Source: Ruditapes philippinarum
Taxonomy: Eukaryota
Length of the DNA stretch: 64,000 nt
Direction: 5' to 3'
Assembly (NCBI RefSeq): GCF_026571515.1
Contig: NW_026855127.1
Location: 124,001-188,000, forward strand
A program made the translations under genes and the position numbers. Below are positions 16,701 to 37,400 of this stretch, in pieces; the first letter of the stretch is position 1; each line of letters opens with the position of its first letter. The notes beneath the pieces are model-generated. The model saw only the letters and a program-made list of their open reading frames with translations. It searched no databases and was not told the origin of the DNA.

Positions 16701-19700
16701 TAAGTGTATCCGTAATTTTATTATTATACAACAACAATCTTCAAAACAGCGTCAGAGACGTTCGTTTCTAAAAATAGAAGAAACAAATCATCCGGTTTAC
16801 TTATTAGATATATAGAGGAGCGGTAGATTAGATGTAAAGAGAGGTTTCCTTGTGTCTTGTGTATTTTATTGTCGGCAGATTTCATTTTTCACCTTTATTC
16901 TTTTAATTTGACAATCATATGAAACAATTTATCTACAAATAATATTCTTAACCTTAAGAAAATCTGAAGGTCAATTAAACTAATAAGTAAGAATATTGAA
17001 CTATAATTTTAGCATATATTGCTTAAAATTTTTCAACAACAAAATTAGATGTTACCTTGGTGATTAAAAATTGTACTTTAGATGACTCGGCACCGACATG
17101 CATAAGAGGTCTATGTCCCCATATATTAATATAAAATTGTGTTGTATTTAATCAAACTTGATAATTGTCTTGATGGACAAGAGAACTTTTCATTATTATT
17201 TTTTCTGTGTTGATAAAAAATAATTTCTTTTCGTTGATTTTAAATTATATTCCCTGCAGGACTATCACGATACTTCAATAGTGAGGGAGCGATTGAGGAA
17301 CGCTGGGCAGATGGATCGCCTTTAACATTCACAGCTTGGTGACTTCTTTCTCTTTTATTCATGTCAATTTTTTACCATTTTAAGTAACCGTTTATATCTG
17401 TATTTGTAATTAGTTAATCATTGTTTTTAATGTAATTTATGTGATAAAATGTCTTATCAAATGCTACATGCTTTATAAAGAGGGAACAGTATATTGGTCA
17501 TAAAAATTTAAACCTATTGAATAATTTACATTTAATAAAGTAGAGATTAACTTATTTGAATGATAAAAGTTGTCAACACTTAACCTGCTGAAACAAATAA
17601 TTTACAGTAATAAGCCTTTGACAAAACTATAGAGCCAGATCAGCCAACACATTCATGGAATCAGATCAGGCACTACACTGTTGGAAATGTTTGAAAACTG
17701 AAAAATGTCTGTTTGGTTTGTTTGTTGTTGGTTTGTGTGTATGTGTTTTTTTTAAAGCTAGGCAAAATTTATGAGCTTCTTTTCAAGCTAAGGAGTGATT
17801 CATGTCAAGTGAAGCCAAAATCATTTTCGTTAATTTTAACATTCTTAATAAATAGGTTTGTACGAGATGACTCTTTAAGTGTGCAGTTTAAAGGTGTCGA
17901 AGCGGTGAGCGGAAGTACGAATTGTACAATTTTACATTTTGGTAACGTAGAAAATGATAAACTTTGGTACAGGATTCCTTGCTCGGAGGAAGTTTATTAC
18001 TTTGTATGTGAAGAAAGGTTTCATTTTAATATATCTACTGACGTAGATATAGGTAAGTGTTTTAATAGGTTGAATTTGGTAATTATAATTATTTTGTATC
18101 TATTAGTAACATCCAATCATTGCTTTTAAAGTGTAACACGTGACCATCTCGCATATATTTAATCAGTTACAGCATAATAAAAGCATAATTCCCCCTTTCT
18201 ACAGATTATGATATTTACTTATTTCTGAGAAATAATGTGCCTTTCAATTGACTTGTTCATCCTTCTATCTGGAGAAAACCATTCTTCGGCTTTAGGGAAA
18301 TAATAATTTTGGGTATAATTGTAAATTGGTCCAAAATTATATTATTGCAAACAAATTGAAATCTTGGATGTCGTTGACATAAATCAAATAATATAGATAA
18401 CATCTGTGATACTCATGATTGTTACTTAAAAACTAGAGAAGCAACAGTAAATAATAAATACACACGTAAATAAATTATACAAAGCAGATCCCTTTTTTTC
18501 GTAACAATTTTCTGATATATTGTAAGGTTTTGCTGTTACTACTGAGACCATCCAGAAATATAAAAAGTATAAAGACCTTAAGCTTCCAAAATAGAGAACG
18601 TCTAAGATTGTTTTGTTCCTATAATTTGAAAATAAGTTATCTCATTATAGATATAGATGCGAGGGAATATCCTGATACTGGAACGGACCTATATGATATC
18701 AGGCATATGCTATTTGAATGTTCCGAAGATGAGTTTGTATCTCCACTCTCAGTTTGTAACGGTGTTGTTGAGTGTTCGAACAACGAAGACGAACTTCACT
18801 GCAAAGGTAAGTTTTGACCGCCGATGTAAGTTATTAGTCATGCTATATTTGTTCAATTAAATACAAAATTATAATAAAAATAGTGTACAACACAGAAAAA
18901 GAACACAGGAAAACAAACACAACGCGTTTGTATTAATTTATTTCAGAGTGTGTTGAGATTGCAAATAAAAATTTATCATTTTTAGTGAAGATGGACGTAA
19001 AATAACCTCCTCACATCGTTCATATTGCGTTCTTACGTAATTTTTGTTGCTATTGCCTGCGCTTTTATGGTTGGTTATGTGCTTTATGCCGCGCTCACAA
19101 AGAAAAGCGAATAATTTTATTTGCACTACATATAAGCGCATTTGCGACACAGTGACGTTCGGATTCAAAGTATTGCTTACAAGCAAAAAACAAAATTACT
19201 ATGTATATTGAAACTACCCAATGAACGTATTAGAGACACGGTGGCATATGAATAAAATGTATTGCTTACAAACAAACGATAAAGTTTCTGTTCTAAATTC
19301 TCTTTTGCTTAACAATTATTATATATTGCCATACATTTCAGAAAAAAGAAATTGCACCAAAAACTATTTCCAATGCACGGATGGCGAATGTATTCATTCC
19401 AGTAGAGTATGTGACTTTAGACAGGATTGTGCTGACAATTCCGATGAATATTGTGGTACAACTTCTTACTTTCTATTTTTAGATTTCTATTTTTTGAAGG
19501 GTTTCAGCCGCTTATGAGATTTTATAAAGTGTGTTTGATTTAAAGCAGCATGCCTCAAGATTTGTGATAATTGTTACGAAAATTTTGAAGAAAAAAACAT
19601 ATTTAAGTTAAAATATTAGCGACTGTTAACCATGAAAGTAGTTTTGCGCACTGCAAACTGCAACTTACAACCAAAGTTAGTATCAAAAAAATTGATTGAA

Positions 19701-22700
19701 ACTAAAATAGTCCTTTCATGCAGTAGAAAAATGTTGAAAAATATTCGAAATCAGTCATTACATGTCATCTCTTACCTTAATCGTGAATCTTTTATTATAA
19801 TATTTTTCATTAAATCTTTGCATATTTTTCTCAATTTTATTTAGACATACAGCTTTAATGTATGGTCGGATTCAACGATTCAACGATATTTTAGTAATGT
19901 TTCGTTGCTAAAATGGGAAATTGCATCTGCTTCCATTGCATATGTAATCATAATAGAATGCAATGTATGAAGACTGTTGCTTGTTATTTTTGGACGCACC
20001 TTGTATTGTTCTTGTCATAAGAATCGTTTTTTTATGTCGGTTTTCTCGTTTTTGTTTAACAACTTTTTCTTTGAGCAAATTGTAGCTTTCTAGGGATGAA
20101 TAGCTCTTGTCGTTGGTTACAACATTTATAAGATGAATGTATGATTGGTTGGTGGGGCTATACATTGCACCAATACTGCAAAGGTCTGAAGGAAGACCTT
20201 AGCTGCCCCTTAGTGCATTGTTTCAGGCACGAGTGGGCACTTAAGTAGAACCACCGACGATACCTTAGTTAGCTGAATAGTTTCCTCCCATGAAACAGTT
20301 TGAAGTCAACGGGCTTAATCACTAGGCGAATGACGCCCAACGCGTGTACTTTAGCGTTGTTGTTGTTGTTTTATGTTTGTTTTATTTTTAATTTGCACGG
20401 TTTTCATGGTAAAACATCGAATATAGTAATTTATTTCATGCTTTCCACTGTTTTATTGCAATATATCAGATGATTTTATTCTGATAAACCATGAGTGAAA
20501 TTTATAAAATATAATTTTCACTGTAGCCGGACAATATCTGAATGCGGATGAAAAGAAAATCAAACTTAAACGGAATAACAGGCAAAAATAAATGCTGTCA
20601 TGCGTAAATTTTGCTTCTTTAAGAAAAGAAGGTCGATGTCACCATACACCATATTAAAAATGTAACAAAATTAAAGAAATTTAACAGAACTTTATTTCAA
20701 AATTGATGATGTGACATCATGATGTGATGACGTCACAAAAGAGAATGCACGACGTTACGCAGCGAAAGCAGTAAAAAAAATACTTAAAACCACTTAAAAA
20801 GAAAATTGATTTGTTATACATATAAGAAATATATTTCATTCGTGAACACAAGCTATTATAGTTTAACTCGCGGCTACGCCACTTGTGAAAATATTGCATC
20901 TGGTGTTCACTCAATGAAATTATATTTCAATCATACATGCAAAACAAATAATTTTCTCTATTGAATTATGAACGAAAGCAATTTTCAGTATTTGTGCATC
21001 ATTGAAATAATAAACAGTAAGATAAATAACCCATTAAAACAATCTAAATATTAAGCAAATTAATGTTATTAAATTGTATATGTGAATATAATGGTTTAAC
21101 GCTAAACTATATTATGTTTTTACAATTCAATAATACATGTACCAAAGAAAAAGTCAATATTTTTACAGATTACCAGGCCTGTTCACTGGCAACGGAATTT
21201 GAGTGCAAAAACTACCAATGTATTCCAAAGTACCAGGCTTGTGACGCTGTCCCACATTGTGTAGACGGTAGCGACGAGAAAGACTGTGGTAATATTTACT
21301 TATGAAAATCAGAATGTAGCAATTCAGATAAGACTTTATAACCAGTATCAACACCTTTTCTTGTATAAAGATAATAATTCACACAAATGATTATTCTATT
21401 TTTAGACCATGCGCACATACATAGCTTGATTAATAAATCAAATAAAGCGGGAAAATACAATTAATCAATTAACTTTATTGTATAAAGAACATTATTTACA
21501 GCAATACCAATGTTAGTAATAACAAAAACAAAAGGCCTGAAACAATCGTCTGGGATACAAGTGATGATTTTATTGAATAAATGATTTTAAAACCTTATCT
21601 TAAAATTATCATATTGTTTTCAGCAAACTGCAACATAAGTGTATCCTTTCCGTGTATAGACAAACGCTGCATTCCAAGGGAACTTCTTTTTGACAATCAT
21701 CCAGACTGCTTAAATGGCGAAGACGAAGATTATGGTAGAAGCTTTTACGAACTTCATTCGTGTGATGATGTGCTTCTTGCTGGTATCTGGGAATCTGGAA
21801 TATATTATATAGGTCAGTAATTAAACATTTTCGTGGTTTAGTTTTGAATTATTTAACCCGAAGTTAACGGAAATGCCATTTACTTGCACTTACGTTCCAA
21901 AGTTGTTTATGAACATGCTCAATCAAACCGAGCTTGCAACAGTTTCAATATTGCCGTTTTAGGCGTAATTTATGGATTGCTTTTTCACTTTTGCCACATC
22001 AGTGGTATAAGTGCCGTGTGAAAGCCTTGACAAGTTGCACGTATATTTAATTAAAGATGTCATATTTTCGATCTTTGAATATTGTTCAGCACAGGTTTGT
22101 GGTATTTTTAATTTCTTCTATATTGACCTTTTTCAGTTTGGGTGATTTTAGCATTCTTACTTAAATGCTGTATAATCACCCTTGGTGCCTGCTTTTCAAA
22201 ATTGTCTTTTGTCGTCTTGTCTGTGATGTGCAGGCTTCATAACCGTTGATCCCCTTTCAAAATTATTTGTGTTAGTTCTGCCAATTGTTATCTTGTTAAG
22301 GGCACACGCTTTCCTTACCTTGGGGACCAAACTCCGCTTTTCATGGAATAACACTCAAATGTCACATTCAAGGTTTCATGATGACCGTCGTTATCCGAAC
22401 CTGCAATATTTGCTATTTTGTCGTTTTGGGTGTTTTTTATGGATTCCGTTTTTCTCTATTTTACCTAGGAAATAATCATGTATACTACACATAAAATAAT
22501 AGCTAGTTTGATAGTCGTCCATAAAATATAAGTCGACACTTTAACATGAGTTGCTAAAGTTTATTTGAGTATTTCAATTATAATTGACGAATCAGGCGAT
22601 GTCATACAATTTGTTCACTTCGTATAACCTGTTTTTAGAATATAGATTTTTGTTTGCAAATGTAGAACGAAACTGATATCAATTAACCTTATTCTTATGT

Positions 22701-25700
22701 TTCAATGATTTCAGATACTCTTTACAATTTGAAAACCTTACTTAAAAGTACAGTTTGATTGTCAGCAGACCTGTTTTTTCTTCATTAATATTTAAACCCG
22801 ATCGATCAAAATAAAGTCGAAACGAAATTGAACCATGTTATGTTTCTAAAAGTAGAAAAGAAGAATCATATCGTCAGCGAATAAAAACAATATGAGTGTC
22901 AAGTCTGCTTTTTGTAAATTATCTTGTAGCTACCAGATGGACGGAGTGTATATTTGACTTTGACAATCAAACAATCACGATGACTATTTCAAATATAGAT
23001 TGGAGTCCCGGTTTCGAAGATAGAAGTATTTACTTGATCCCGTCAATGTTAGACTATAATGGTTACATCTGTTATCAGACGGTAAGGTCGTCTAAATGAT
23101 TTCCTCATAAAATTACAGAACGAAACAGATTTTTTTATCATCAAGGCCTTTATAGTTTCTGTTTCAGTAACGCCCCAAAGTTAGTTTTAGTCGCGTTTTG
23201 TAGTTTTTGTTTTAATCACTTTCTGTGATTGTTTCAACCACGTTCTGTTATTTTAGTTTCAATCACGTTCTGTTATCTAAGTATCAAATCACTTCATATT
23301 ACGTTTGTTTAAATCACGTGTTTTTGTTTCAATCACGTTGTGAATTGTTTTGTTATTATCTTTGTAACAGTTCCATCTAGATTTACCGATAAGCAGAACT
23401 ATGCTTAGTCAAGACAATAGTCTCTCTGAATGGAAGGAAAAGAGTATCAAACTTATTGGTAACAGCACAGAGGCCATTCTAAGAGGGTATACTTTTCTTT
23501 TAACCAATGAACTTCTTAAATTGTTTTTTTAATTAGATTTTTGGAACTGATCACAGCAATATTGGGGATACAAAGATGAAAAGTTTGTCAACAAACTGTA
23601 AATAGCTTTGTCAGTCTGCATGTATGTGCAGGGTGATCTGATTTATCGCTAATGGCAAACACTAATCACTAGGTCCATGGTTTACGCTTCATAGTTTTAA
23701 ACTCACACCGAGTAAATATTAAAAGACTTTTTAAACTATAAGGATTAGCCGATACAGTGCAGGAAATTAGGAACGTGTCTTTAAAATTTCAAAATAAATA
23801 AAAGTAAAAAGATCGATTGTTGTATGTCAGTTAAAGGGGCACGAGGGATGTTGCACTTATTTATTATCCCTCATGTACAGACTTAATCAAACCGAGTCTG
23901 CAATTTTTATGTAATTTTATTGTGATTAATGCTTCCGAGGGATCACTTTGTTTCCAGATTTTTATTTTGTATATTCTCTTCTTGAATGGGTTGGCCTTAT
24001 ATCATTCTTTATCGGTATCGGCTCGAATCCTTTATTGTACATTAAAATTGTTTATTTCAAATTGTTTGATCAATAATTAAAAGAACAAACGGTCAGTCTG
24101 AGATAAATCCTGTCTGGTTCCGTACCGACACTGTATTATTGTATTTAAGAACGCTAATAAACCGAGATGAATTCACTGGAAATGTGCAAGTCTCATTTGG
24201 TACGAATTACAATCGACAGAAATTAGCATTTGGAATTGGGCCAATCACCTGTGTTAAAAGTGAGTACAATGCTGAATTAAAGAAATACTGGATACATAAC
24301 ATTTAAAGATGAAACGCGCATCTCGGTTAAAGCCTTTTTAACGGTCACTTATAAATAAATTCTAAAATTCTAATTAAAGCAATTTAATTTACATGTAGGA
24401 GCTCATTCTTTTATAACAGCCTTTGATTAAAGAAATTGACGTTGATAGTCTTTACTTACTTTGTAACTATAACATTTATCACACACCCGTGTCGATTTTG
24501 CGACTCCGTAAATATGGTATTGCACGGCCGTGCATATATTTTGACGTGACGTCGTTAGCGTTATACAAACATAGTGTAAAGTTGCGCTAAATGTTACCGT
24601 TATACTATAGGCGCGTCGATGTAAAATGACTCTTATTTCACTTTTAACGGTCTTTATTTTGGGTATGTGATAAATAGAATATTAAATTCGTGTAAGTTCA
24701 TTTCTGAATTTATTGCACTCGTTGAATGAAATAATATTATATTTATTAATAATATAATTTATTCAACTTATGCAATAAATTCAGTATTGAACTTACACTC
24801 ATTCACTATCCTATATGTATTTTACTAGATTTGACAGACGGCATCCGAACGAACTTGATTGTACCAGAATACATTTCTGCACACGTGACTAAAGGGACCG
24901 AATGGAGGAATTTAACTTCTTGCGGCCTTCTAGCTAAACCAATATTTACAAAAAGATCATGTGTATTTGATGTTGACGGGCAAAAACCAGTTGAAGGTTG
25001 CAGATCACTTGAGCATCTTCAAAATTGTGGTATGGTACAAGCAAGTGCTGGCAGATACCAGTTCCTTTGTTTGGTTGTTTGTTTGATTACGACTTAAACA
25101 CATTTTTTGGAATTATCACTGCGACCGGTCTACTTAACAAACAAACTGTATAACTTACCACTGATACCTAATTTCTCTGAAAGTGACCAAAAATAATCCC
25201 AAATGGTTACTTCACCAGTGAGAGACAAATTACCATCAGACTCTCTGTCCGAGATCCATTAAAGCCTCGTCCCACAATTGAACAAGAGACCCTTAAATTA
25301 CTTTACAATACTGAATTAAATATGTTAACAATAAGTTAAAATATTTAAATAAGTAGTACTTTTATGCATACATAAAATTGTGCTTCATATATTAGTAAAA
25401 TGAATGAATAATTATAATCTAAAAATTTGATGATATGTCAAATCATCTGATGATGCCGATTAGAATAAATCTTTAAAACGATTTGGATAAGTCGCTGATC
25501 TCAATCATTACTTTTGTTATCATCAGTACATACAGATATGTGTTGATCTGTTCCCTATTATGTGTAATTTTATGTTTTGCAGAATTTATCAACTGCGAAC
25601 CGCATTATTTTAAATGCCCCGGAAGCTTTTGTATACCATATCATTTTGTATGTGACGGTCGGATTCATTGTCCAGATTCATTTGACGAAAGAAATTGTTG

Positions 25701-28700
25701 TAAGAATTTTTCATTCCTGTTATGTATTTGTATTCAGAATGTAAGTTGTACTCCGATAATCTAGTGTAACATTATTAATATTTCTTTCACGATTAACTTT
25801 TCAAATTTTAACATATCATGTGTAAAATTAATTGTTATTGTTTGGCATTACTTTAATAAAAAAGTTTAAAAATGTCCAGATTGAGGAAATTAATAGATAA
25901 ATATATAAAATATGTTTTAAATGTTATAAATTTTCTAATTTACACTTCAATATACAGACAAAAGGTTACTTGCAACACATGCAAACACATGCAAAAGACA
26001 CATTTGTGTCTCCCGTGGTGGTAAAAAAAATAAAATTAAAATATTCGTTTATCATATATACATCATGTCCTGTATGTGTTATTTTTCTTTTCAGCTTCAG
26101 GTGCAAGAATTAAAGGCATACTTATCTACTATATCGGTAAGGATGCGGAAATTGAAGATGCAGCACACAACTTGGCTTCACAAATGTTCTCAGAAGATAC
26201 ACATATTCAAATATTTTTCACTGTTAAGCATAACATCAAAATGACTGAAAATGGCCAGTCTTCTGTATATTTGGTCCGAACATATAACGTGTTATCAATG
26301 ACAGCACTTAGTAAGAAATATAAAAAGGAATATAATATTTCAATGGATAACTTTGAGAGTGATGTCGAAAAGCTGATACGTTTCAACGGCACGAATGAGA
26401 CTTTCTCCGTGTTCTTACAGAATGGGGAGCTACGTAAGAAAGAAGAAGACCTTTTCCATAAATTTGATGAGACGTTAGCGACTCAGTATAGGTTCAGAAT
26501 AGAAAAAGACGGTTCTTTCTACAAAAATCTACAGGTATCAATGTCAAAAGACGGAAAGACAAAATATTTAAAACTGAACAACTGGAAACTTTTAAGAAGT
26601 GGAGGGACATTGCTTTTTCCAGAAATATTTAGTGGTATGTATTTTCTTATAACAACTCATCGTTCAGTTTGATTACTTTGAGCTTGTTTGTTTTTCAAAG
26701 CAGACAAAAGCGTAACATTTCATTAAATATAGACAGTGAATTAGATAAAGGCGCAAAAAAAAGAAACAAAAAAAATTGCAAAGACTTAACAAAAAATAAC
26801 CCTGATGAAGACATGTGAGAGTCGAAACGTCGGTTATCATCATTAAATAACGTCGGTTATCATCATTAACTAAACCTTAAAACTTATCCTGTGTTGATTG
26901 TTCCGATTTGATTGATTTTCTTAAAAAATAAAATATATAAGCCTAGACTTGAAGTCTAATAATGTCACATTAAAATAGAGTAAGTAATAATTATGGGCAA
27001 TATATTTGTCTATGATTCCAAGTAAAGAAATCCTCAACGCAATATTCAAAGAAGAAAAACCCAAACACAAAAAATAGCAGAACTGTAATGAATTCCAGGA
27101 TAACTTGTTTAAATCTGCCTCCCTTACAAAACTTAATATCTGCAATTATATGATTTACAAAAGGGGAAAACTTAGTGTTACAGTTGATTTGTAATATAGT
27201 TTGCTGATAACTATTCAGATGTTTATATATTAGATAAAAGTGAGTATTGTGCTTAATTGGCGAAAGTTTCACGTTATATCTTTAAATGTGTTGTACATAA
27301 CACAAATGTTTTTCCTGACAGTATCTTAATAATCATTTTGTATCTTTTTACAGCTAACCACGGTTGTCATAATGCATTTCGATGTAGCTTTAGTCACGTG
27401 TGTCTACCTTTTGAACAAGTTTGTGACGGACGAAAACATTGTCCACACGGAGACGACGAGGATCTATGTCATTTTGTTTGTCCTAACAATTGCACATGTG
27501 AAGGGTACAGCTCATCATGTCCCAGTCTACAGTACAATGTTTTCAATTCGATATCAAGTCTTGTACGAATTCTAGATATAAACCATTGTAAGGGTTTAAA
27601 CGGAACGCTGGATATAAAAACAGACTTGTACTTTTTAATAGAACTCAATGTTTCATTTTCAAACATACGACTCATCCATAATGAGTCATTTGCTCATACA
27701 AGAAATATTCTGATTCTAGATTTAAGTTACAATTTACTATCGTTTATTCAAAAAGAGATATTCAAAGATCTGAGGTTTATAAGGATACTTTTACTTGAGG
27801 GAAACGAACTCATTTCTACAATAGAACCAAACGCCTTTTATGGTTTAGGACTAAAACATCTTTCTGTTACACACACAATGCTACAAGTTGTATCCAGGCG
27901 AATCTTTAATGGATTCAATGCAACGAAACTAGATTTATCATATAACACTATCGAAACAATTGAAGACAATGCATTTGAGGGATTGCACGTTGAAGAACTA
28001 GATATAACGTTTAATCCCATTAAAAACTTTGGAAAAGCAATGTTTACAGGCGTAACCGGTTTGCAAAAATTAAAAACTCCGATGTACAAATTTTGTTGCA
28101 TGCGCCCGATTTATTTGGAAGAGAATAAATGCTTTCCACATCAAGATGAGTTTTCATCCTGCGGAGATTTAATGAGAAGAACCAGTCTACAGTTTTTGCT
28201 ATGGATCATAGCAGTTCTTGCTATTGTTGGTAATATTCTGTCTGTGGTATTCAGAATGGTCTTCGACAAGAAACGCATCAAAATGGTGTATGGAATTTTC
28301 GTGACCAATTTAGCATTTTCCGACATGTTGATGGGATTTTATATGCTTATTATAGCTATTGCTGACAGACTGTACCATGATAGGTGACTTTTTATGCCCC
28401 CACAGAGTGGGAGCATATAGCGTTGCACTTGTCCGTCCGAGTGTCCGTACGTCTGTCCGTCCGTCCGTCTGTCCGTACGTCCCGAAATCTTTTGAACGCA
28501 ACTCCTCTTAAACCGGATGGCAGATTTCGCTTAAACTTACAGGGATGAACAACCTTAATGTGTAGATGGTAGCAAAGGAAGGAATTTTTGCTGCGACCAA
28601 ATTTAACAGAATTATGGCCCTTTGTTGATTTTTTCACTATATACTATGTAGAAATTTTGTGAACGCAACTCCTCTTAAACCGAATGGCAGATTTTGCTTA

Positions 28701-31421
28701 AACTTACAGGGATGAACAACCTTAATGTGTAAATGGCAGTAAAGGGAGGAATTTTTGCTGCGACCAAATTTAACAGAATTATTGCCCTTGGTTGATTTTT
28801 TCACTATATACTATGTAGAAATTTTGTGAATGCAATTCCTCTTACACCGGATGGCAGATTTTGCTTAAGCTTTCAGGGATGAACAACCTTAATGTGTAGA
28901 TGGTAGTATCCGTGTCCTATGGACACATTTCTAGTTCTAGTTAGGTCTTGTCTGTTTCATCTTTTAAAATATCTAAGATGTATTTTTCTTTACATAATTT
29001 AAGAACCTGGACAAAAGTTTTCTTTTCTAGTTTTACTTTTTTATATTTACGTTGTTATATGTAAACCACCTGTTTCATCTTGGAAATCGATTGGGTTAAG
29101 TTAAGGTAAAAGAATTAAGCAAACAAAATCTGTTTTCGTTTGTGTTACTATTAAGACATAAAGATAAAGATAAAGTAACAGCATTGTTCACTGAATGTTT
29201 CTTTGATATTACAATTAGAATGTATCGTAACTATTTCTGTTTCGTATTACATTCGTACCGTAAGGTTCTGTTTCAATAGATACATAGAGGAAGACGAACG
29301 CTGGAGAAGCAGTGGATGGTGCAGCCTGGCTGGAATTATGTCAACAGTCTCCTCCGAGGCAAGTGTCCTTTTCGTTTGCTTGATTACTATCGATCGGCTC
29401 CTGGTTATCAAATATCCCTTTGGTTCTTTTAAGATATCGACAAGGCAGGCTAAAATTGTAGTGTCAATTTGTTGGTCTATTTGCTTGATTGTTGCCGTTA
29501 TTCCAATCATTGAATCTAAATATTTTGGAAACCAGTTCTATTCAAAATCAGGGGTTTGCCTGGCACTACCTCTTTCAAAAGAACGCTCCCCCGGATGGCT
29601 TTACTCTGTACTCATATTTATTGGATTCAATTTCGTTACATTCATCTTGATCGCACTCGGTCAAATTCTTATCTTCTGCGAAGTGAGACGGGCTGCGTCA
29701 ACTATGAAAAAGAAGAGTTCTGCAAGACGAAATGACCTGAAAGTTGCAAGAAATCTTCTGCTTCTTGTCGGAACAGATTTTGCCTGCTGGTTTCCAATTG
29801 GTTGCATGGGTAAATATTAATTTCACGTAGTTTTCATTAACATATAAATGTTATAGAATACAAATGTAATTACACTAGGCAAAATTGATATTAAGTGTTC
29901 TTCTACTCAAAAGTATCGCTTGCAGCTCATAAACTTGAAAATTCACCATGATAATGATGTTCGAATGCAAAAGACATTTTATTGATTATTGAGAATACAA
30001 GTCTAAAAAATGTTCATGAACCAACATAATTCCATGTTGAGCATAGCACTGATACGTTTTTAGGTATTATGACATTACATGGGTATTCTATACCTGGGGA
30101 GGTTTATGCTTGGACTGCAGTTCTAGTTTTACCTATCAATTCAGCTATCAATCCATTCCTATATACACTGATGGCAATCATTAGCAAGAAGGTAAATTGT
30201 TTATTTTCACTGCTTTGAAACATCCTTTATTTTTCGTCTGTTGTTAAAAAAAAGTTCTAAAGCGAAAAACATGTCCTTGTGCCATGCTGCATTTTAAACA
30301 AATTCTGCGATTGTTTATTGGGTCTTACGTTTTTTGTCGATTTTTAATTCCCACAAAAGTGTATTTGTTCTTCATTGTTTTCGAAGCATGTTACATCTTG
30401 TTATTCCGTTTGCCATAAATGCAAATTAAACCTACATTTCATTTTACTAGAGTTTTAACCCAAGTGAAGATGAACAATCGCGCCCTGAGGACATTGAAGG
30501 TAAGTTAGTATAGATAAAATTTTAACAAACAGAAATTTTCAATAGGTTTAAACATAGATCTATCATATACAGAAATACATTTTCCCCATAGAATAATAAC
30601 TTTATTAATTATTGATGTACGTTTTAGATACCTAGCTATTTGATAGATATTTAGTATAAAAATAGGTCTCATGATTGACCAAACACTTGTAAATTGTTAA
30701 TTAATTACTTAAAAGACTATTATATATATTTGATTTATTTTAAAGAAAAAAGGTCAGCATTTTTGCGGGCATGTCAAGGTCTATGGTTCCCGGATCCTGA
30801 CATCAAATACGAAGTTCATCAGTTAACTAGTGATATCATTACGCAGTTGAAGCCTGCAGAGCGTTTGATGATCTTTGCTAAAATGTTCAAAAGTTTACAT
30901 CTGCACCATAGGCATGGATTGTTATTCAAGAATTTAGACACGGAAAAGGTTTTGGTTTACTTGCGAGGAGGGCAAATCGTATGTATTATAATCTTGTCCT
31001 TATCGTTTGTATTTCTTTCAGAACTTTGTTGCGTTTAGTTTATCATTACTTGATTAAATCTTGTTTGATAAAGTTTGTAAATATAGAGGAATTATTTGCC
31101 AAGAGAAACTTTTTTTTTATTTTCGAAAGAGACGATATTTTAAGCAGACATTAGCATTTGTTGATCTTTAGTTACCAACTAAACTTAATCTCCGATCAGC
31201 CTTCACCGTTTTCTTGTCCGTTGATTTCTTATAAATGTCAATTTAAAAATATTTCTTTACTATTTTTATCTGTTTCAAGGAAGTTCTGTTTATGAATATT
31301 CTTTCAGATTAGTGGCGGTGGTCTTAGAATCATCCACAAACCAACGCCTTTTTCAAGAAAAACAGAATCGAAGCAAGACATGTACATTGCGGGGATACTT
31401 TTACGACCTTTAACAAAATGA
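1..31421 (+). CDS. Giant multi-exon GRL101-like / LGR type C GPCR (LDLa-LRR-7TM) with a mosaic lectin/CUB/discoidin ectodomain and a kinase-like tail; 5' incomplete
   Basis: Hand-assembled exons, all GT-AG and phase-compatible: <5-162, 680-796, 3951-4033, 4626-4770, 5214-5237, 8366-8501, 9034-9158, 9800-9975, 10540-10713, 11021-11171, 11382-11723, 12095-12309, 12597-12846, 14019-14219, 14737-14973, 16120-16161, 16352-16570, 17260-17338, 17856-18052, 18651-18806, 19342-19455, 21169-21288, 21624-21812, 22930-23081, 23371-23486, 24150-24259, 24829-25029, 25583-25699, 26095-26634, 27354-28383, 29280-29809, 30064-30191, 30451-30499, 30746-30978, 31308-31421 (TGA). The sum is 6970 nt with no internal stop. 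LGR-C hallmarks: hinge [21 protein letters not shown]6 [11 protein letters not shown]7 [12 protein letters not shown]. Confidence 0.85.
1053..1438 (+). mobile_element. Mariner (DD34D) transposon 3' fragment, frameshifted, with right TIR
   Basis: LLHDNAPFH...[16 protein letters not shown] has exactly 34 residues between the two Asp. It continues in another frame as [26 protein letters not shown]. The end ...ttctgacatcccctcg|TA (reverse complement TACGAGGGGATGTCAGAAA) is a mariner-type terminus with a TA target. Confidence 0.92.
1531..1666. repeat. 22-bp minisatellite, 6 copies (TCCATTGATGTAGTAAGTGGAT)
   Basis: Head-to-tail near-identical units; one has a 4-nt insertion and one a T>A change. 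Confidence 0.95.
8366..9158 (+). CDS. Exons 6-7: N-terminal half of a C-type-lectin-like domain
   Basis: W..CYY...C..GRYVTLLS...IYVSV resembles CTLD beta1-alpha1-alpha2-beta2. Splice sites: tag|CC, AG|gtgatt, cag|G, G|gtaaga. Confidence 0.55.
8932..9010 (+). mobile_element. 3' fragment of tRNA-derived SINE with (AAAC)n tail
   Basis: ctccaccagtaaagccagaacgtcgc..tgtgtcggtgcgacgtaaaac matches the 3' end of the copy at 12926-13151. Confidence 0.75.
9205..9680. repeat. Degenerate (GAT/AAT)n trinucleotide low-complexity tract
   Basis: Runs of gatgat/ataata; explains the Ile-rich spurious ORF 9168-9677. Confidence 0.9.
9800..11171 (+). CDS. Exons 8-10: F5/8 type C (discoidin) domain
   Basis: [32 protein letters not shown]|VDL..VDGI...[20 protein letters not shown] is the canonical FA58C pattern. 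Confidence 0.92.
11382..11723 (+). CDS. Exon 11: PAN/apple-like domain
   Basis: [20 protein letters not shown]...CNLYS (C-x3-C-x6-C..C-x-L) in a symmetric phase 1-1 exon. Confidence 0.75.
12095..14973 (+). CDS. Exons 12-15: two divergent CUB domains
   Basis: CUB1: [26 protein letters not shown]...LYMYFWT..GRGFRA. CUB2: [34 protein letters not shown]. Confidence 0.8.
12835..13640. repeat. Degenerate ~41-bp tandem array (consensus approx. aaagtgattttcagaaggtttatatttaattgactgaggac), interrupted by the SINE
   Basis: Recurrent ttttcagaaggttt..acaaagt units at roughly 40-bp spacing. Confidence 0.7.
12926..13151 (+). mobile_element. 5'-truncated tRNA-derived SINE with 13-bp TSD
   Basis: B-box GTTCAAATCC, body gaggaagctatccagctagcttacgg..gcccgctcgtgcc..aataatgcacggagaggcacctgagg, (ACA)n tail. 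Flanked by tttgattgattaa at 12913-12925 and 13152-13164. Confidence 0.88.
16120..18052 (+). CDS. Exons 16-19: C-type lectin domain
   Basis: [61 protein letters not shown]. Confidence 0.92.
18651..21812 (+). CDS. Exons 20-23: four LDL-receptor class A repeats (first and fourth lack one Cys pair) plus the start of the fibrinogen-like module
   Basis: [24 protein letters not shown]; [29 protein letters not shown]; [31 protein letters not shown]; [28 protein letters not shown]. All exons are phase 1-1. Confidence 0.92.
20184..20330 (-). mobile_element. Degenerate SINE copy (same family as 12926-13151)
   Basis: Reverse complement reads gaggaaactattcagctaac..gtcggtggttctac..gtgcccactcgtgcctgaaacaatgcac..ggggcagctaaggtcttcc. 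Confidence 0.75.
21750..24259 (+). CDS. Exon 23 (3' part) to exon 26: shortened Caspr/neurexin-IV-type fibrinogen-like module
   Basis: [39 protein letters not shown] parallels the Caspr pattern SCExY..G..SGxYxI..CxM..CEQxF..EW..YxLGPLxC. Confidence 0.6.
24829..25699 (+). CDS. Exons 27-28: GRL101-type Cys module plus LDLa repeat
   Basis: [24 protein letters not shown] followed by [35 protein letters not shown]. Confidence 0.85.
26095..26634 (+). CDS. Exon 29: 180-aa Cys-free alpha/beta domain, probably a degenerate vWA domain
   Basis: 540-nt open exon with strong sites (tttttcttttcag| and G|gtatgt), phase 1-1. Alternating beta/alpha segments GILIYYIG / [12 protein letters not shown] / IQIFFTV / FESDVEKLI / FSVFLQNG / [10 protein letters not shown]. 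Confidence 0.7.
26796..26860 (+). ncRNA. Minimal type I hammerhead ribozyme motif (Penelope-like) with a duplicated substrate strand
   Basis: ataacc-CTGATGA-a-GAC(atgtgaga)GTC-GAAA-CG-TC-ggttat. Stem I ataacc/ggttat, intact core, GUC triplet; AACGTCGGTTATCATCATTA is repeated directly downstream. Confidence 0.75.
27354..28383 (+). CDS. Exon 30: LDLa, LRRNT, about 7 LRRs, hinge, TM1-TM2
   Basis: [16 protein letters not shown]; CPNNCTC; LxxLDLSYN repeats; [13 protein letters not shown]; AIVGN; NLAFSD. Confidence 0.96.
28389..28936 (+). mobile_element. Non-autonomous Helentron-associated (HINE/DINE-1/pearl-like) element with internal 167-bp tandem repeats
   Basis: Starts TTTTTATGCCCCC, then a (GTCC/GTCT)n microsatellite and about 2.5 near-identical 167-bp units (starts 28494, 28661, 28828). 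It ends with a 3' hairpin gtgtcc-tat-ggacac and ATTTCTAGTT. Confidence 0.85.
29280..30191 (+). CDS. Exons 31-32: TM3-TM7 of the LGR 7TM domain
   Basis: [21 protein letters not shown]; [11 protein letters not shown]; NFVTF; TDFACWFPI; [12 protein letters not shown]. Confidence 0.96.
30451..31421 (+). CDS. Exons 33-35: cytoplasmic tail with a protein-kinase C-lobe remnant (pseudokinase-like)
   Basis: [37 protein letters not shown] resembles alphaE plus the catalytic loop (..GLxYLHxxG+IHRDLKPxNILV). [13 protein letters not shown] resembles alphaF (xKSDVWSxGVLL). Splice phases 0-1-0, stop at 31419-31421. Confidence 0.7.
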
Positions 31422-31727
31422 ACTTCATTAAATATATAGATTGTAAACAGAACGGCCGAGTCAACGCATTTACACATGCATGCAAACAAAATCTGATTAA
31501 GATACAACGGACTGATGTTTTACTTATTTTCTGATATTTGTTGTTGTCTGTTATTTTAATGCATGTTTATCGTCAGTGTTTTTGTAACCAAGACTTTTTT
31601 TAAAAAATACCTTATTTTATCTTTAAACTGTTTTCAAGTGTTATATTTCCTGTTTTAATTGTATGTCCAAATGAGACAAACTTGTTCATATATGGACAAA
31701 TATTTCTGACAATTTCAACACAATTTT

Positions 31728-31733
31728 AATAAA
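31728..31733 (+). promoter_or_regulatory. Candidate polyadenylation signal of the LGR gene
   Basis: AATAAA about 310 nt after the stop, followed by T/GT-rich sequence. The AT-rich context lowers specificity. Confidence 0.45.
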
Positions 31734-33273
31734 CTTTTTTTAAATTAATTCGTGTTTACGTGATATCAATATAATTTGTTTTTTTTTCAGAATTGCTTTT
31801 TCTTTGAATGTGTTTATGGTTATCTTATCTTGAAAATTGATATATTTATTTGTTTGATATAATTTTCCTTAACTGTCTGACTGTTTATATAATAAGCGGT
31901 TATTTTCTACGTTAAAATAGTAAAGAAATATCATCTTTACGGTGTTTTTATTATTTAATCTTATGATGATGTCAATTATTAAATCTTATGATGATGTCAA
32001 TTTTCTTGAAATATTCTATTTCAACATTTCAAGATATCTAATTTTATATTGACTTTTCAAGATATTTTTGCGATTTCAATGTATTTGTTTTTTCTATTTT
32101 TTTTCTGGAACTATCATTCTTGAAATATTTTTGGCCAGATACTTTAACAATTTAAAGGACACGATGTAACAGTATTAAAGGGACATACTTGTATCAATAT
32201 TATATTTATCGAAAAGCGTTGAGTTTTTTCCCTTTACAAGTGATTTTTGATACCAAGGACAGTTACTACCTGTACATAATTTCTTAAAATTAGACGATTC
32301 ATTATTATTTTTGTATTTATTACCATAGTTTAAAAATAAAATGTTGTGAATATTTCGTTTTTTTTTGTGTTTGTTTTCACAATGCTTTTGACTGTGTGCC
32401 CGAGACGGGGTTTGCATCATTTGTTTCAATTTTCTGAATAATAATAAGTTGCTTGTATTTGTTTTACAATATGTTTTTGTAGTTTATTCATTTACATAAT
32501 TAATTACATAAAAATAATTTTTACATATTGAGTAGATAGTTAAGAAGCTGTTTTGAAACTACAAACTATTTCGAGAATAGCAATTTCAACTTCATAAATT
32601 TAAGATTTTATTATGCACACCTTACTATTTCAACTTCGTGAATTCAAGGTTATAATAAGGTTTATAATGAAAGGAGATGATCCTTCAAACGCTGACAGGT
32701 GAAATCACCGATTCGGTTCAATTATGTCAGTTAATAAGAGATAATGGAAGAATTGATAGTGCATGCCAATCACCGTCCGCATCGGTTTTCAGTCATCAGC
32801 CCTAAAAATCACATCAAGTAAGGCACAAGGGGCATGAAAGCGATGAACAATGTTTCATAAATTTCCACTCAAGTTATGTACCTTGCACCTCTTGCTTCAA
32901 TATAAACGTAAAATTCTTAAATAGAATCGAATTTGAATGTTCATCAGATAAAACAAAACAGCATACAACAGTGAAAGTTCAGTTTAATATGTTGTTTTGT
33001 TAGTTTAGCATCATAATATGCCCCCTGTTCCTTGTCTAAGTAGTTTTTATAATTGTCCAATTCATTGTAATCATTGATATTTAAGCTTTTGATGTTAAAG
33101 ATGGAATAAAATCTTCTGAAGAGGGTACCAACGGGAGATGATAGAAGATGTCACACTGTTTTTAATCTATGATGAACAGACCCAATTAGATAAAGTACAA
33201 ATTGTTCAGTTAAATCGATGTCATTGAGCCCTCCCCATTCTAGAGCTGTATAATATAACTGGTAGTGGGAAAA

Positions 33274-33350
33274 ATATGATTAACAAGATCATCAAGGAAA
33301 GGCGGCGTTCAATGAACGCAGCCCCCACCCGTCCCAGCAACAAGAGCCAG
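33274..33350. repeat. Interspersed repeat; inverted copy at about 36540-36616 (possibly a retroposon 3' tail)
   Basis: aatatgattaacaagatcatcaaggaaaggcggcgttcaatgaacgcagccccc is the near reverse complement of gggggttgcgttcattgaacgccagctttccttgaagatcttgtttatcatatt. Confidence 0.7.
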
Positions 33351-34172
33351 CGGCAAGGAGCCCAGGAGGATCCCAAACAAAAACAGGGAAGGGCATAAGG
33401 CAGAGCACGGGCATGCAAACCACTACCTAAGAATAAATAATTAGAAACTGATAAGGAACTAAAAGAAAACAAATAATAGATTGAATATTAGGCCCATAAA
33501 GTCAAAAGGCACAAGGGAAGGGGACATGAAGACCTAAGATGTCCTTAAGATCAGTAAAATTAAGCACAATAAAGTACTTGAGTACAGAACGTACCTTTGT
33601 AAATTAGCAGAGTTATTTCTAATAATGTTCCTAGGTTAATAAAGCACACAGCGGTAAGGAAAACCGGCCGCTATGTAATTACAATGCAAAAGCGGCGGTT
33701 CCATAAAAAATGTTTACGTTGTTAATGGTAAGCATTTGCGTGTCAACGTTTTTGTAGGTGGAGTTTTTTTAAGTATTTTGTTAAATTAAATCTGTTAGGC
33801 CAAGCAAGTAAATGTTATCAGTTCTACTGAGAAGTACATTATGTATTTAAGTAAATGGAACTGGATTAAAGCATGTTTCGATAATCTCTTTGGCGATAAC
33901 ACAGTCTTTGACCTTCAAATCGTGAAATATCAAACTGAGTATGTATCTTTACTGAAAACATTTGCTTCCATTTATATTTTAATAAAATAAAAAGCAACAT
34001 TTGAAATACATTTCATTATCATCACATGAGATTCTGAAGCTATAAACTTCATACAATTCTTTTTATTTGCTTCATGACGCGAGTATCGCGAAATTCTTAA
34101 TAATACATTAATATACATAATCGAGAAAAACTGAATCCCCTAAACAAAGTCTAGCACAGGAAAATTAAAAAA

Positions 34173-34410
34173 GGTTGCAAGCTCGGTTTGATTGAGTCTG
34201 TTCATGGACGGTAATGGACATAGTTACCCTCTAAGCCCACTAACAACGGTTTAAACAGAATTCAACATTTAAATAAAGAAATGGTGAAATTTTGAATTAA
34301 GAAACATCCACAGATGTGTTCATACGACCGTTATCATGAAAACTTCAATGTGACACAGTAGTGCTATTCCATGAAAAGCGGTGTATGGTCCCAACGTAAA
34401 AGAATGCGTT
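34173..34410 (+). repeat. Representative copy of a locally abundant dispersed repeat (core tgcaggctcggtttgattgagcctgttcatgga)
   Basis: Related segments at about 21830-21940(-), 22166-22400(-), 23830-23903(-), 41503-41524(-), 43755-43850(+), 44709-45021(-), 53395-53426(+), 53878-53910(-), 63471-63577(+). Confidence 0.8.
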
Positions 34411-37400
34411 TTTCCCCTCAAAGAATCATTTTGAACAAACTACTTAACATTTTATCTTTTTTGTTGCTGTTGTTGTTTCCTTGCCAATTTGTTATTTTCA
34501 CGTTCTTATTGAGGTCCTATATATTTTAATGTTCTTAATTTTAAAAGCAATAAGACTAAAAATAGTCTAAAAATAGAAATTGTGTTTTTCATTTTATTTA
34601 TTTCCCACAAGACACACTCATATACTGTGTTGAATTTTCAACTGAATATTGCCTTAGGTTTCACAGCTAAATTACACAAATTCAATTTTCGTTTTAAAAC
34701 CTTTTAAAAGCAAGAACGCATTAAGATTCAAAGTATGACTGAAAATGACGGTGACGGATAAATAGGGTTTTAAATTTTACAGAAAACATATTAGGCACAT
34801 TGCAAGTGTACAATCTATTTTGGTTAAACCTGATTATTTTTTAAGTGGATTTGCATTGCACAGTCCATAGAAAGTCAAACGGATTTCTATATCAAAATAT
34901 TAAAATATTGCTACCAAAAGTATAGAGCCTGGTCAGATTTCACAGATGTACATAATGGCCTTGGTCTATGCTGGTTGCAAAGGCTAATGGTCAGTTCCAG
35001 TTTACGTTGATACGAAGGGTCACAGTTTTTTTCTATAGACATACAGGATAACGAGAATTGTTTTATATAATATATCCTTTAAAAAAATCCAACATTAAAG
35101 AATTAGTTAACAAAAACATTTTATAATTAGCGAACGAAATAGGTGGTCCTTTTCCTTTTTTTGCGAATTTTCTGCATTTTATTTTCGGTCATGCTGGACA
35201 GGCTACAGGCTAACATTCTCTAAAAACAATATAAAATTATTTTTTGCTCTTTCTAAAGAAGTATAAATCTATTTATTTCCGAGGCGTTAATGTCTTAAAC
35301 TGGCTGGTTCATCTTTAATATCAACATACAGAATCATACAGGATCATCAATAACACTTTTATGCGTATGTATCTGGTTGCATTTTGCAGGGATCTTACTG
35401 TCACTTGTTACTGTCAAACTTTATTATCTATTAAAAATGTTTGCAGAAAAAACAAATAAGCCATAATCAGTAACTGTAAGTAACTGTAGGTATTTAAGAT
35501 AGTATGAAGATAATATATGATTCTTAAAGAAACATAATAAATGTTTAGAATGGTACGTGATATATTTGATTTTTGGAGTTAAATACGTAAACTAATTTCA
35601 TGACACAAACACATCCCATAGAGACATACAAAACAAACAAAGTACAAAACTATATATAGAAAGATTCATATTTTATATGAATTACTTATATAAGAATACT
35701 TGTTTATCTAAATATATTATGCTTTGTACTACAAAAAGTCCTTTGAGACGCACCTACGCTTAATTATTGACGTCACAAAAACTTCTTTATAAAAGAATAC
35801 TCCAGAGCATCAATATGCTATTGACACTGGATTTAGTTTAATGGATATAATGAATTCCTTAAAATAGAACAATAACTGTAAGAATGCATTAACAGTTTTT
35901 TGGGATGGGGAATGGGAACGAGAAAAACATTATCAAATTATCAGGTTGTTCAATAGTTTAGAAGAAATTTACAATAAGTAAATTTTATTTATAATTTATT
36001 GAATTGATTTTTATAACTTATTGAATTGAATCATGATGTTTCCTGTGAAAATATCAATTTTCTCGAGTAATTCATTATATACTATTAGTCTGATTTTGTT
36101 TAGGATTCATTTTCAATTTAGTTTGAAATGTGTTGTTTACAGTAAAGTCAGACCAAAAGCACTCAACCCAAGCAAAATGTCTGGTGGTTTTCCTCGAGGC
36201 ATGATCGTTTTTTTTAATCGGCGATATGTTCTTTTTGTATATAAAGTGTTTAAATATTCGTGAAAAGACCATTTTTTCGAATCAACCGTTAATACACAAT
36301 GTGTCTGATTCCGTTACATTATCGTTTTATGTATTAGTTTGGAGGTGTTTTAATGCAATAGAAAGCCAAAAGCAGCAAAACAAGCAAAACTTCCGGGAGA
36401 CGTTTGATTGTTTTATTGTTTTTGTTTTTTTTTGGTTTTTTTTGTTGTTGTTTGTTCTTTTTTGACCGGCTATTGGTTCCTTCTTTATGTACAAAGTGTA
36501 TACATTTTCGTTAACGGCCTATAGTAAATGATATTATGACTGACTCGTTTTGATGGTCGGGCGGGGGTTGCGTTCATTGAACGCCAGCTTTCCTTGAAGA
36601 TCTTGTTTATCATATTTATTTTGACTTTATCGTTTTTGTACCTGTTATGAATTTAGTCATCTGGACGTGTTCACTAAAGTAGAAAATTACCCCTGTCAAT
36701 CACTTTAAAAGAAAAATGCCGATTTACATCGTTGACATTTTTACAATCCTCACATTTAATTTTAAAGCTTATTATAGTTTTGTATGTATTTTATCAGGAT
36801 TACATTTAGATACATGGATGGTAAGTAAAGGTTGGTGATTTAAATCATGAGATAGTAATGGTTGCCGGTTTCGCCCATTTCAAACCCGCGTAAAATTTAA
36901 TCGTTTTATCATAAAATGTCGCGAGTAACTTACAAATCCACGAGATTTTCTGTCGAAATCGTACGAAATTTTGCGAGGAACGTCTAAACCTCGGTATTTT
37001 ATAGCAATTGTTGGAAACGGTAAAGAAAAATTTGACTTCAGTGGCCGGTAGCGTCCATGCTTTGACACCAGATTTTATATCATATTAAAAGTCATTGCTC
37101 CTTTAGCATAACTTGAATGTAATGATGTATCATTGCAACAATTAAAAACAGTTGAAACACAACGAATTGGAACATTAATTGCTTCAATTTCTATATTTTG
37201 ATTATATTTTTGCCCTTTTATTTAAAAGTAACATTTATTTCTCTCACTTTACTTCGACAAAGATTGATTAATCTGTTCGCTTTATGGCGGAACATTTAAT
37301 GCTCACATCTCATTTGGGAATTACCATTATATTTGACGTGGTGTTCGAAAATTTTCTTTGTGTATATCATCTTAATAGTAATCTCTTTCTAATTTCGGGG

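Follow-up and report, generated by a model that had tools for sequence, protein, structure and literature searches.

G-protein-coupled receptors (GPCRs) carrying kinase-type domains at their C-terminus have been described in oomycetes and amoebae, where these domains are complete catalytic units (PMC6033456, PMC5784254), and the term GPCR-bigram is reserved for a GPCR with a complete accessory catalytic domain C-terminal to the seven-transmembrane (7TM) region (PMC6033456). Here we analyze a stretch of 64,000 nucleotides from the clam Ruditapes philippinarum (contig NW_026855127.1, positions 124,001 to 188,000; hereafter the window, from whose first letter all coordinates are counted), which on its forward strand, from about 21 kb to 31.4 kb, carries the gene for a receptor composed of several LDLa modules, a leucine-rich repeat (LRR) block, a rhodopsin-type 7TM region and an extended cytoplasmic tail with a resemblance to protein kinases. 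The kinase-homology domain of receptor guanylyl cyclases offers a parallel from another receptor class: it has a full-length kinase fold, binds ATP, and lies between the membrane and the cyclase of a single-pass receptor. Except for its tail, the clam receptor has the architecture of GRL101 of Lymnaea stagnalis, the type C LGRs and RXFP1/2, which likewise combine LDLa modules, an LRR ectodomain and a rhodopsin-class 7TM region with an NPxxY motif; it differs from them in having a kinase-like C-terminal domain. To our knowledge, such a domain has never been described for GRL101, the type C LGRs or the RXFP receptors.

We estimate the probability at roughly three in four that this gene codes for a GRL101-like GPCR with a spliced tail of about 140 residues, holding a dead domain of about 100 residues that derives from the core of a serine/threonine kinase and probably acts as a docking or regulatory module.

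Reading of the sequence places the 3' part of the gene in exons at 27354-28383, 29280-29809, 30064-30191, 30451-30499, 30746-30978 and 31308-31421, with a stop codon at 31422-31424; the borders are all of the GT..AG type and the phases are compatible. The exon at 30064-30191 encodes TM7 with the NPFLY motif and helix 8, and by translation ends in phase 0 at ..SKK, leaving the three 3'-most exons (tail exons 1 to 3) to supply the approximately 140 residues that follow helix 8. We compared window positions 27200-31900 with contigs from three Logan sets and with the reads of a raw RNA-seq run (X21), and found the joints 30191/30451, 30499/30746 and 30978/31308 in spliced contigs of two sets that come from different studies (X1 and X3). 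The X1 contig (record 6) is 719 nt long, and the X3 contig (record 16), with 1755 nt, spans 27904-31649 over five joints, beginning in the LRR exon and taking in every later exon; the joint 29809/30064 is present in both X2 and X3. Since introns have been removed from these contigs, they must originate from RNA, and since they carry the tail-exon joints, transcripts do not end after the exon at 30064-30191. Depth is low, and in the raw run a few reads fall on the exon at 30746-30978. The initial annotation of this locus had proposed that the frame goes on past NPFLY through three further exons and had singled out the three tail junctions for checking; RNA joints from two studies bear out the former, and all of the latter were found. 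The tail peptides it quoted are present in the translation, with the correction that the protein does not end in ...AGILL and has five more residues (RPLTK), up to 31421.

These data speak directly to the possibility that the tail exons are part of a different gene or are non-coding read-through, with the fusion being an artefact of prediction. In its favor one might cite incomplete splicing of some transcripts, as 104 nt of intron ahead of 30064 remain in the X1 contig; against it, a single 1755-nt contig joins the LRR, the 7TM region and all the tail exons in frame, which counts as a refutation, and the fusion is also present in NCBI gene models of both Mercenaria and Ruditapes. We consider an artefact barely credible. 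As an observation in its own right, the intron sequence retained in the X1 contig (29960-30063) precedes the TM7 exon, while the downstream introns have been spliced out, which indicates either incompletely spliced transcripts or an internal start.

The tail is not restricted to this gene. Two proteins of Mercenaria mercenaria, XP_053379173.1 (P0003) and XP_045203508.2 (P0031), align with it exon by exon. Compared with XP_053379173.1, identity is 47% in tail exon 1 (30451-30499), 49% in tail exon 2 (30746-30978) and 56% in tail exon 3 (31308-31421), as against 68% in the LRR exon, 74% in the TM3-6 exon and 81% in the TM7 exon; tail exon 2 is also 49% identical to the tail of XP_045203508.2. 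A hidden Markov model (HMM) built from the close tails matches two tails of R. philippinarum database proteins end to end with 23.4 and 14.0 bits, scores that none of 1000 shuffles equalled, and these tails present a recognizable, more diverged version of the window tail. Across the family alignment the hydrophobic pattern of the alphaE-like and beta7-like stretches is largely conserved, and among five aligned full-length homologues four keep the Asp of the alphaF-like stretch and all five its Gly. On these alignments, the tail is no orphan and is best described as a conserved C-terminal domain, about 100 residues long after a linker, of GRL101-like receptors, shown by sequence comparison in at least three venerid-type clam lineages, if the window gene, Mercenaria and the NCBI Ruditapes proteins are counted separately. 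That it had been kept, as the initial annotation supposed, agrees with 49-56% identity to the Mercenaria tails next to 74-81% in the 7TM region: judged by these figures the tail changes at roughly double the rate of the 7TM region but is clearly constrained.

Searches with the window sequences themselves recover few relatives. Among 1.84 billion representative proteins, and also in a word-based search, tail exon 2 found a single match, a 108-residue open reading frame (ORF) on a 1162-bp metagenome contig (P0001), which is 89% identical to it and evidently represents an allele or the form of a sister species. Two metagenome scans with the window sequence were blank, and a region search with the tail of XP_053379173.1 returned only itself. 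Translated searches of the clam's own 1.4-Gb genome with tail exon 2, tail exon 3 and P0001 yielded only the locus itself and chance matches, one of which (L002) is not a kinase.

Within the tail, a (K/S)FNPSxxEQ motif directly follows helix 8 (30451-30474, in tail exon 1, where an acidic linker comes after it) and is kept from the window through Mercenaria to the Ruditapes tails, even where the tail has otherwise diverged. It may constitute a sorting or phosphorylation signal; together with the acidic, Ser-rich linker it looks like the ordinary phosphorylation or sorting elements of receptor tails. We also noticed a difference in the tail between two Mercenaria NCBI models that fall into one 90% cluster, P0008 and P0039: the shorter of the two is devoid of the part resembling alphaE and the catalytic loop, which suggests alternative splicing of that exon or a gap in its annotation.

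The kinase affinity of the domain emerges most clearly from its Mercenaria homologues. When XP_045203508.2 was compared with 24,736 Pfam families using hmmscan, it matched the Pkinase family with an E-value of 5.7e-4 (19.8 bits) over residues 341-380, corresponding to profile positions 95-134, that is, exactly at alphaE and the catalytic loop, the same stretch that bears the motif in the window; at the catalytic-loop site this protein reads YKEIKPENVLI. Against a kinase HMM that we constructed from 18 single-exon kinase domains of the clam's own genome, its tail scored 17.2 bits, the best of 1000 shuffles reaching 6.4. We then combined the window exons (entered separately), P0001, XP_053379173.1 and XP_045203508.2 into a subgroup profile and compared it by hhalign with the alignment of the own-genome kinases, which gave a probability of 90.5% and an E-value of 1.4e-6 over 81 columns. 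This alignment is collinear over kinase positions 83-192, running through alphaD, alphaE, the catalytic loop, beta7 and beta8 and then alphaF, and it skips about 25 positions between beta8 and alphaF, where kinases have the activation segment, the P+1 region and APE. The profile that includes the whole family, in which the Ruditapes tails dilute the signal, still aligned with kinases at P 6e-4 with a score of 29.7 and an hhalign probability of 28%; column shuffles (n=300) had a mean of 11.0, a standard deviation of 2.1 and a maximum of 20.4, and the reversed profile scored 14.9. In the converse direction, the tail HMM gave real kinases higher scores than their own reversed copies (Mann-Whitney p 6e-4). 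Thus, the kinase resemblance claimed at the outset is recovered as a profile match once homologues are used.

With the window allele by itself the resemblance is suggestive at best. Tail exon 2 aligns with positions 88-129 of the kinase HMM, namely alphaE and the catalytic loop, at 1.9 bits, with 25 of 2000 shuffles doing as well, and tail exon 3 with positions 174-187, alphaF, at 0.1 bits (16 of 2000). Ranked by the same HMM among the six-frame open stretches from 18 kb of window sequence plus two unrelated loci, tail exon 2 comes about eleventh. P0001 scored 8.5 bits, matched by none of 2000 shuffles, and in a phmmer search of all PDB sequences its top three matches were kinases (E 0.057-0.18), as were 14 of all 19, every one over alphaE and the catalytic loop; against Pfam it returned nothing at E up to 10. 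In a language-model feature search of the ESM Atlas with tail exon 2, kinase sets made up 22 of the 30 nearest clusters (score 0.93, with a low count of shared features), and tail exon 3 gave no usable match there.

Several results weigh against a kinase origin and have to be set beside these. Neither tail exon 2 nor tail exon 3 matches any Pfam family at E up to 10; among PDB sequences, the former has no match and the latter only a chance match to a tau repeat. Even the best homologue, at 19.8 bits, stays below the Pkinase (PF00069) gathering score of 31.7, and the distant Ruditapes tails carry no kinase signal of their own. Nor did translated searches of the own genome, together with a cross-check of contigs, reveal a donor kinase or a member of the receptor family with a fuller kinase domain, paralogues of the latter kind having been among those that the initial annotation had recommended looking for. 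A six-frame scan of 18001-36000 with the kinase HMM found no other kinase remnant in the introns or flanks. The idea of a linkage between kinase and receptor genes was dropped, as among the scored matches no kinase lies near a receptor paralogue; on the sole contig shared by the two they are about 172 kb apart.

One could accordingly envisage a real, conserved family domain in which an amphipathic helix and a hydrophobic beta-hairpin resemble a kinase by chance or convergence. The window allele alone being within the noise of natural open frames, the 28% probability of the all-family profile, the sub-threshold Pfam match and the lack of a fold match with a model of tail exon 2 (see below) would all fit such a view. 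It would leave unaccounted for why unbiased all-family searches by three routes (ESM Atlas, phmmer against PDB, and Pfam) pick kinases each time, why the match always falls at the same kinase positions in the collinear order alphaD, alphaE, catalytic loop, beta7-8 and alphaF, why one homologue has a textbook IKPENVLI, and why the subgroup profile reaches an E-value of 1.4e-6. We therefore regard a chance likeness as unlikely. Because the Mercenaria tails are clear homologues of the window tail, the descent of the latter from a kinase core is, on this evidence from sequence comparison, very probable. The KPEN-type loop of XP_045203508.2 and the CAMK-type best PDB matches point to a serine/threonine kinase rather than to a tyrosine kinase or TKL origin; on the same two grounds an early guess of an IRAK/TKL-type source was abandoned.

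The domain very probably represents the middle of a Ser/Thr-type kinase domain, of which it keeps the end of beta5 and alphaD, alphaE, the catalytic loop, beta7-beta8 and alphaF. Profile alignments assign to tail exon 2 (exon 4 of our numbering, with 77 codons from 30748) the part from the end of beta5 and alphaD through alphaE and the catalytic loop to beta7. Within it, the predicted alphaE-like helix and the relic of the catalytic loop and beta7, ending in ...EKVLV (30847-30957), form the core of every kinase alignment obtained. Tail exon 3 (exon 5), which is joined to it at 30978/31308, would begin with a vestige of beta8 and the DFG region and continue into an alphaF-like helix, a stretch of 13 residues at 31365-31403 that includes the Asp and Gly. 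Of the kinase features, alphaE thus retains its hydrophobic pattern, beta7 its VLV, and alphaF its Asp and Gly, with QDMYIAG aligning to sDvWslG; in kinases, this Asp and Gly brace the catalytic loop.

Only about 45 residues separate helix 8 from the alphaD-like stretch, and the N-lobe, with its Gly-rich loop, VAIK lysine and alphaC glutamate, is not present; both the HMM and the hhalign alignments begin at kinase position ~83-88. The HRDxKxxN signature of the catalytic loop is lost: the window has FKNLDTEK, with FKN (30925-30933) in place of the catalytic HRD triplet in the kinase HMM alignment and Lys in place of the catalytic-loop Asn, P0001 has FRDLETEK, and XP_045203508.2, with YKEIKPEN, still keeps the K..N. 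DFG and an activation segment ending in APE are not present, with at most an F..R vestige, possibly in GGLRI...PFSRK at the start of tail exon 3. Likewise, alphaG-alphaI are missing, the protein ending nine residues after the alphaF Gly. Most of what the initial annotation had said about these features, namely that HRD is replaced by FKN, that the N-lobe and APE are absent and that the alphaF Asp and Gly persist at a shortened spacing (about 25 kinase positions being skipped before alphaF), agrees with the alignments; its statement that DFG is absent is better put as DFG destroyed, given the possible vestige. With the N-lobe, the activation segment with its APE and alphaG-alphaI gone and the catalytic residues replaced, the tail is predicted to be catalytically dead, as had been proposed, and should be incapable of catalysis, ATP binding or phosphorylation. 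The kinase-like stretch amounts to about 90-100 residues of the C-lobe core, in contrast to the roughly 250 residues of a bilobal pseudokinase; being far too small, the tail is neither a kinase nor a pseudokinase domain as these bilobal domains are usually understood.

The AlphaFold model of tail exon 2 alone from a two-sequence alignment has a predicted local distance difference test (pLDDT) value of 71 and shows a strand, a short helix, a long helix and three strands, an order that fits beta5, alphaD, alphaE and beta6-8. Foldseek and VIA-align searches with this model returned no kinase among their matches. A model of the same exon from six sequences had a pLDDT of 60, which is too poor for a fold search.

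Variation between closely related forms of the gene agrees with constraint on the domain. Over 27900-31650, the X3 transcripts depart from the window by about 3% in the exons of the receptor and by 7.6% in tail exon 2, and small deletions follow immediately after the stop codon; they probably derive from another allele or a sister species. In the TM3-6 exon, 13 of the listed X3 differences are synonymous and 3 non-synonymous; tail exon 2 has 18 changes, and the three listed amino-acid changes are identical to those of P0001. If the X3 form is equated with that of P0001, with at least 10 of these 18 changes being non-synonymous, about 8 of 18 would be synonymous as against 3.7 expected under neutrality. 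The catalytic triplet itself varies between forms, being FKN in the window, FRD in P0001 and YKD or YKE in Mercenaria.

Such variability might indicate that the domain, while derived from a kinase, is a decaying relic within a generic, largely unstructured GPCR tail that provides phosphorylation and arrestin sites, the kinase-like part having no role. Under that scenario one would readily understand the twofold faster evolution of the tail relative to the 7TM region, a catalytic-loop triplet that differs even between alleles (FKN as against FRD), the fading of kinase features in the Ruditapes tails and the low confidence of the second AlphaFold model. Harder to reconcile with decay are the identity of about 50% across genera, a distance at which neutral sequence would be unalignable, the end-to-end alignment of the Ruditapes tails, the largely conserved alphaF Asp/Gly and hydrophobic pattern of alphaE and beta7, and the synonymous excess in tail exon 2, a figure that assumes the X3 form to be that of P0001. 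Consequently, we view decay without function as very unlikely. Under the reading of a constrained kinase-core remnant, the domain probably still folds as a small core of two helices and a beta-hairpin at the end of the receptor, given its conservation across genera and the retention of the alphaF Asp and Gly. Most likely it would then have a non-catalytic role in docking or regulation and recruit or hold some partner from the cytosol, much as the interaction module that the initial annotation had envisaged.

In the rest of the receptor, the Pfam 7tm_1 domain (PF00001) is recovered at 29281-29808 with an E-value of 1.7e-24, in the exon for TM3-TM6 (29280-29809; joints 28383/29280 and 29809/30064 in RNA contigs), and the NPFLY sequence in the TM7 exon provides the NPxxY motif of the rhodopsin class. 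The exon at 27354-28383 (acceptor AG at 27352-27353, donor GT at 28384), which is covered by RNA contigs, encodes one LDLa module (Ldl_recept_a) at its start, followed by the LRR block (LRR_8, E 7e-22) and TM1-TM2; further LDLa modules are detected by Pfam at 21063-21302, 21581-21817 and 25483-25761. Its nearest named relatives in an LRR-exon search are NCBI 'GRL101-like' proteins of M. mercenaria and R. philippinarum, the best being the above XP_053379173.1 of Mercenaria. By these matches, the gene is a member of a greatly expanded clam family of GRL101/relaxin-receptor-like GPCRs of LGR type C. GRL101-like receptors have undergone a very large lineage-specific expansion in this genome: beyond itself, the TM3-6 exon matches at least 97 other places, of which about 70 keep an open frame over the whole exon at 52-61% identity, and the TM7 exon matches 90 (91 including itself). 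In the paralogues, the similarity stops near the exon border after helix 8. An expansion of GRL101-type genes in a clam genome is on record (PMC6831834). The gastropod Batillaria also contributes a relative to the match list (P0032), with a tail unrelated to that of the clams.

The remaining features of the locus stand apart from the tail. Its 3' untranslated region probably extends from 31425 to 31733, the X3 contig covering it to 31649 and the sequence offering a candidate AATAAA (putative poly(A) signal) at 31728-31733. On the gene strand, between LDLa exons, lies a 198-residue open frame (26076-26672) without a Pfam match, which may be an unrecognized ectodomain exon or an intronic ORF. 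Three tandem copies of a 167-nt unit (28389-28984), preceded by a GTCC-type microsatellite, lie in the intron that separates the LRR and TM3-6 exons. This unit has no Rfam match, shows a word depth of up to ~1e5 in RNA contigs and is covered by raw reads on both strands, which indicates a very abundant, transcribed genome-wide repeat.

How does the clam tail relate to previously characterized systems? In our literature search we came across no description of such a kinase-like tail for GRL101-type or other animal GPCRs; as far as we could establish, GPCRs fused to a kinase-type domain are not known from animals, and public annotation does not flag a kinase-derived C-terminal domain in the clam receptors. 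The oomycete GPCR-bigrams (GPCR-TKL and GPCR-PIPK) and the RpkA-type GPCR-PIPKs of Dictyostelium likewise join a 7TM region to a C-terminal kinase-type domain; however, theirs are complete, presumably active domains attached to other GPCR classes in protists, whereas the clam protein is a rhodopsin-class animal receptor with a truncated, dead fragment, and falls outside the bigram definition in having only a fragment without catalytic residues. With PF00069 and the classical pseudokinases it shares the order and pattern of alphaD, alphaE, catalytic loop, beta7-8 and alphaF, including the alphaF Asp and Gly, but it retains only about 90 of some 260 positions of PF00069, and pseudokinases keep the whole bilobal fold. 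A further parallel is the kinase-homology domain of receptor guanylyl cyclases, likewise a non-catalytic, kinase-derived cytoplasmic module of a receptor that acts as a regulator or scaffold.

By analogy with such systems, one may tentatively envisage, as a possible though doubtful extension, that the GRL101-like receptors of venerid clams, including giant mosaic forms with ectodomains of the pattern-recognition type, use the kinase-core remnant as a signaling adaptor that recruits or allosterically controls a true kinase or another effector, thereby gaining a G-protein-independent output, and that the family arose from an ancestral animal GPCR-kinase fusion. If true, this would give these receptors an output analogous to that of the kinase-homology domains of other receptor classes. 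More generally, a dead core of the kind we propose here would mean that a kinase fragment far smaller than any recognized pseudokinase can persist under selection, and would provide a natural minimal unit of alphaE, catalytic loop and alphaF for structural study. The partners that bind the tail would offer a handle on the signaling of a very large and poorly understood expansion of bivalve receptors.

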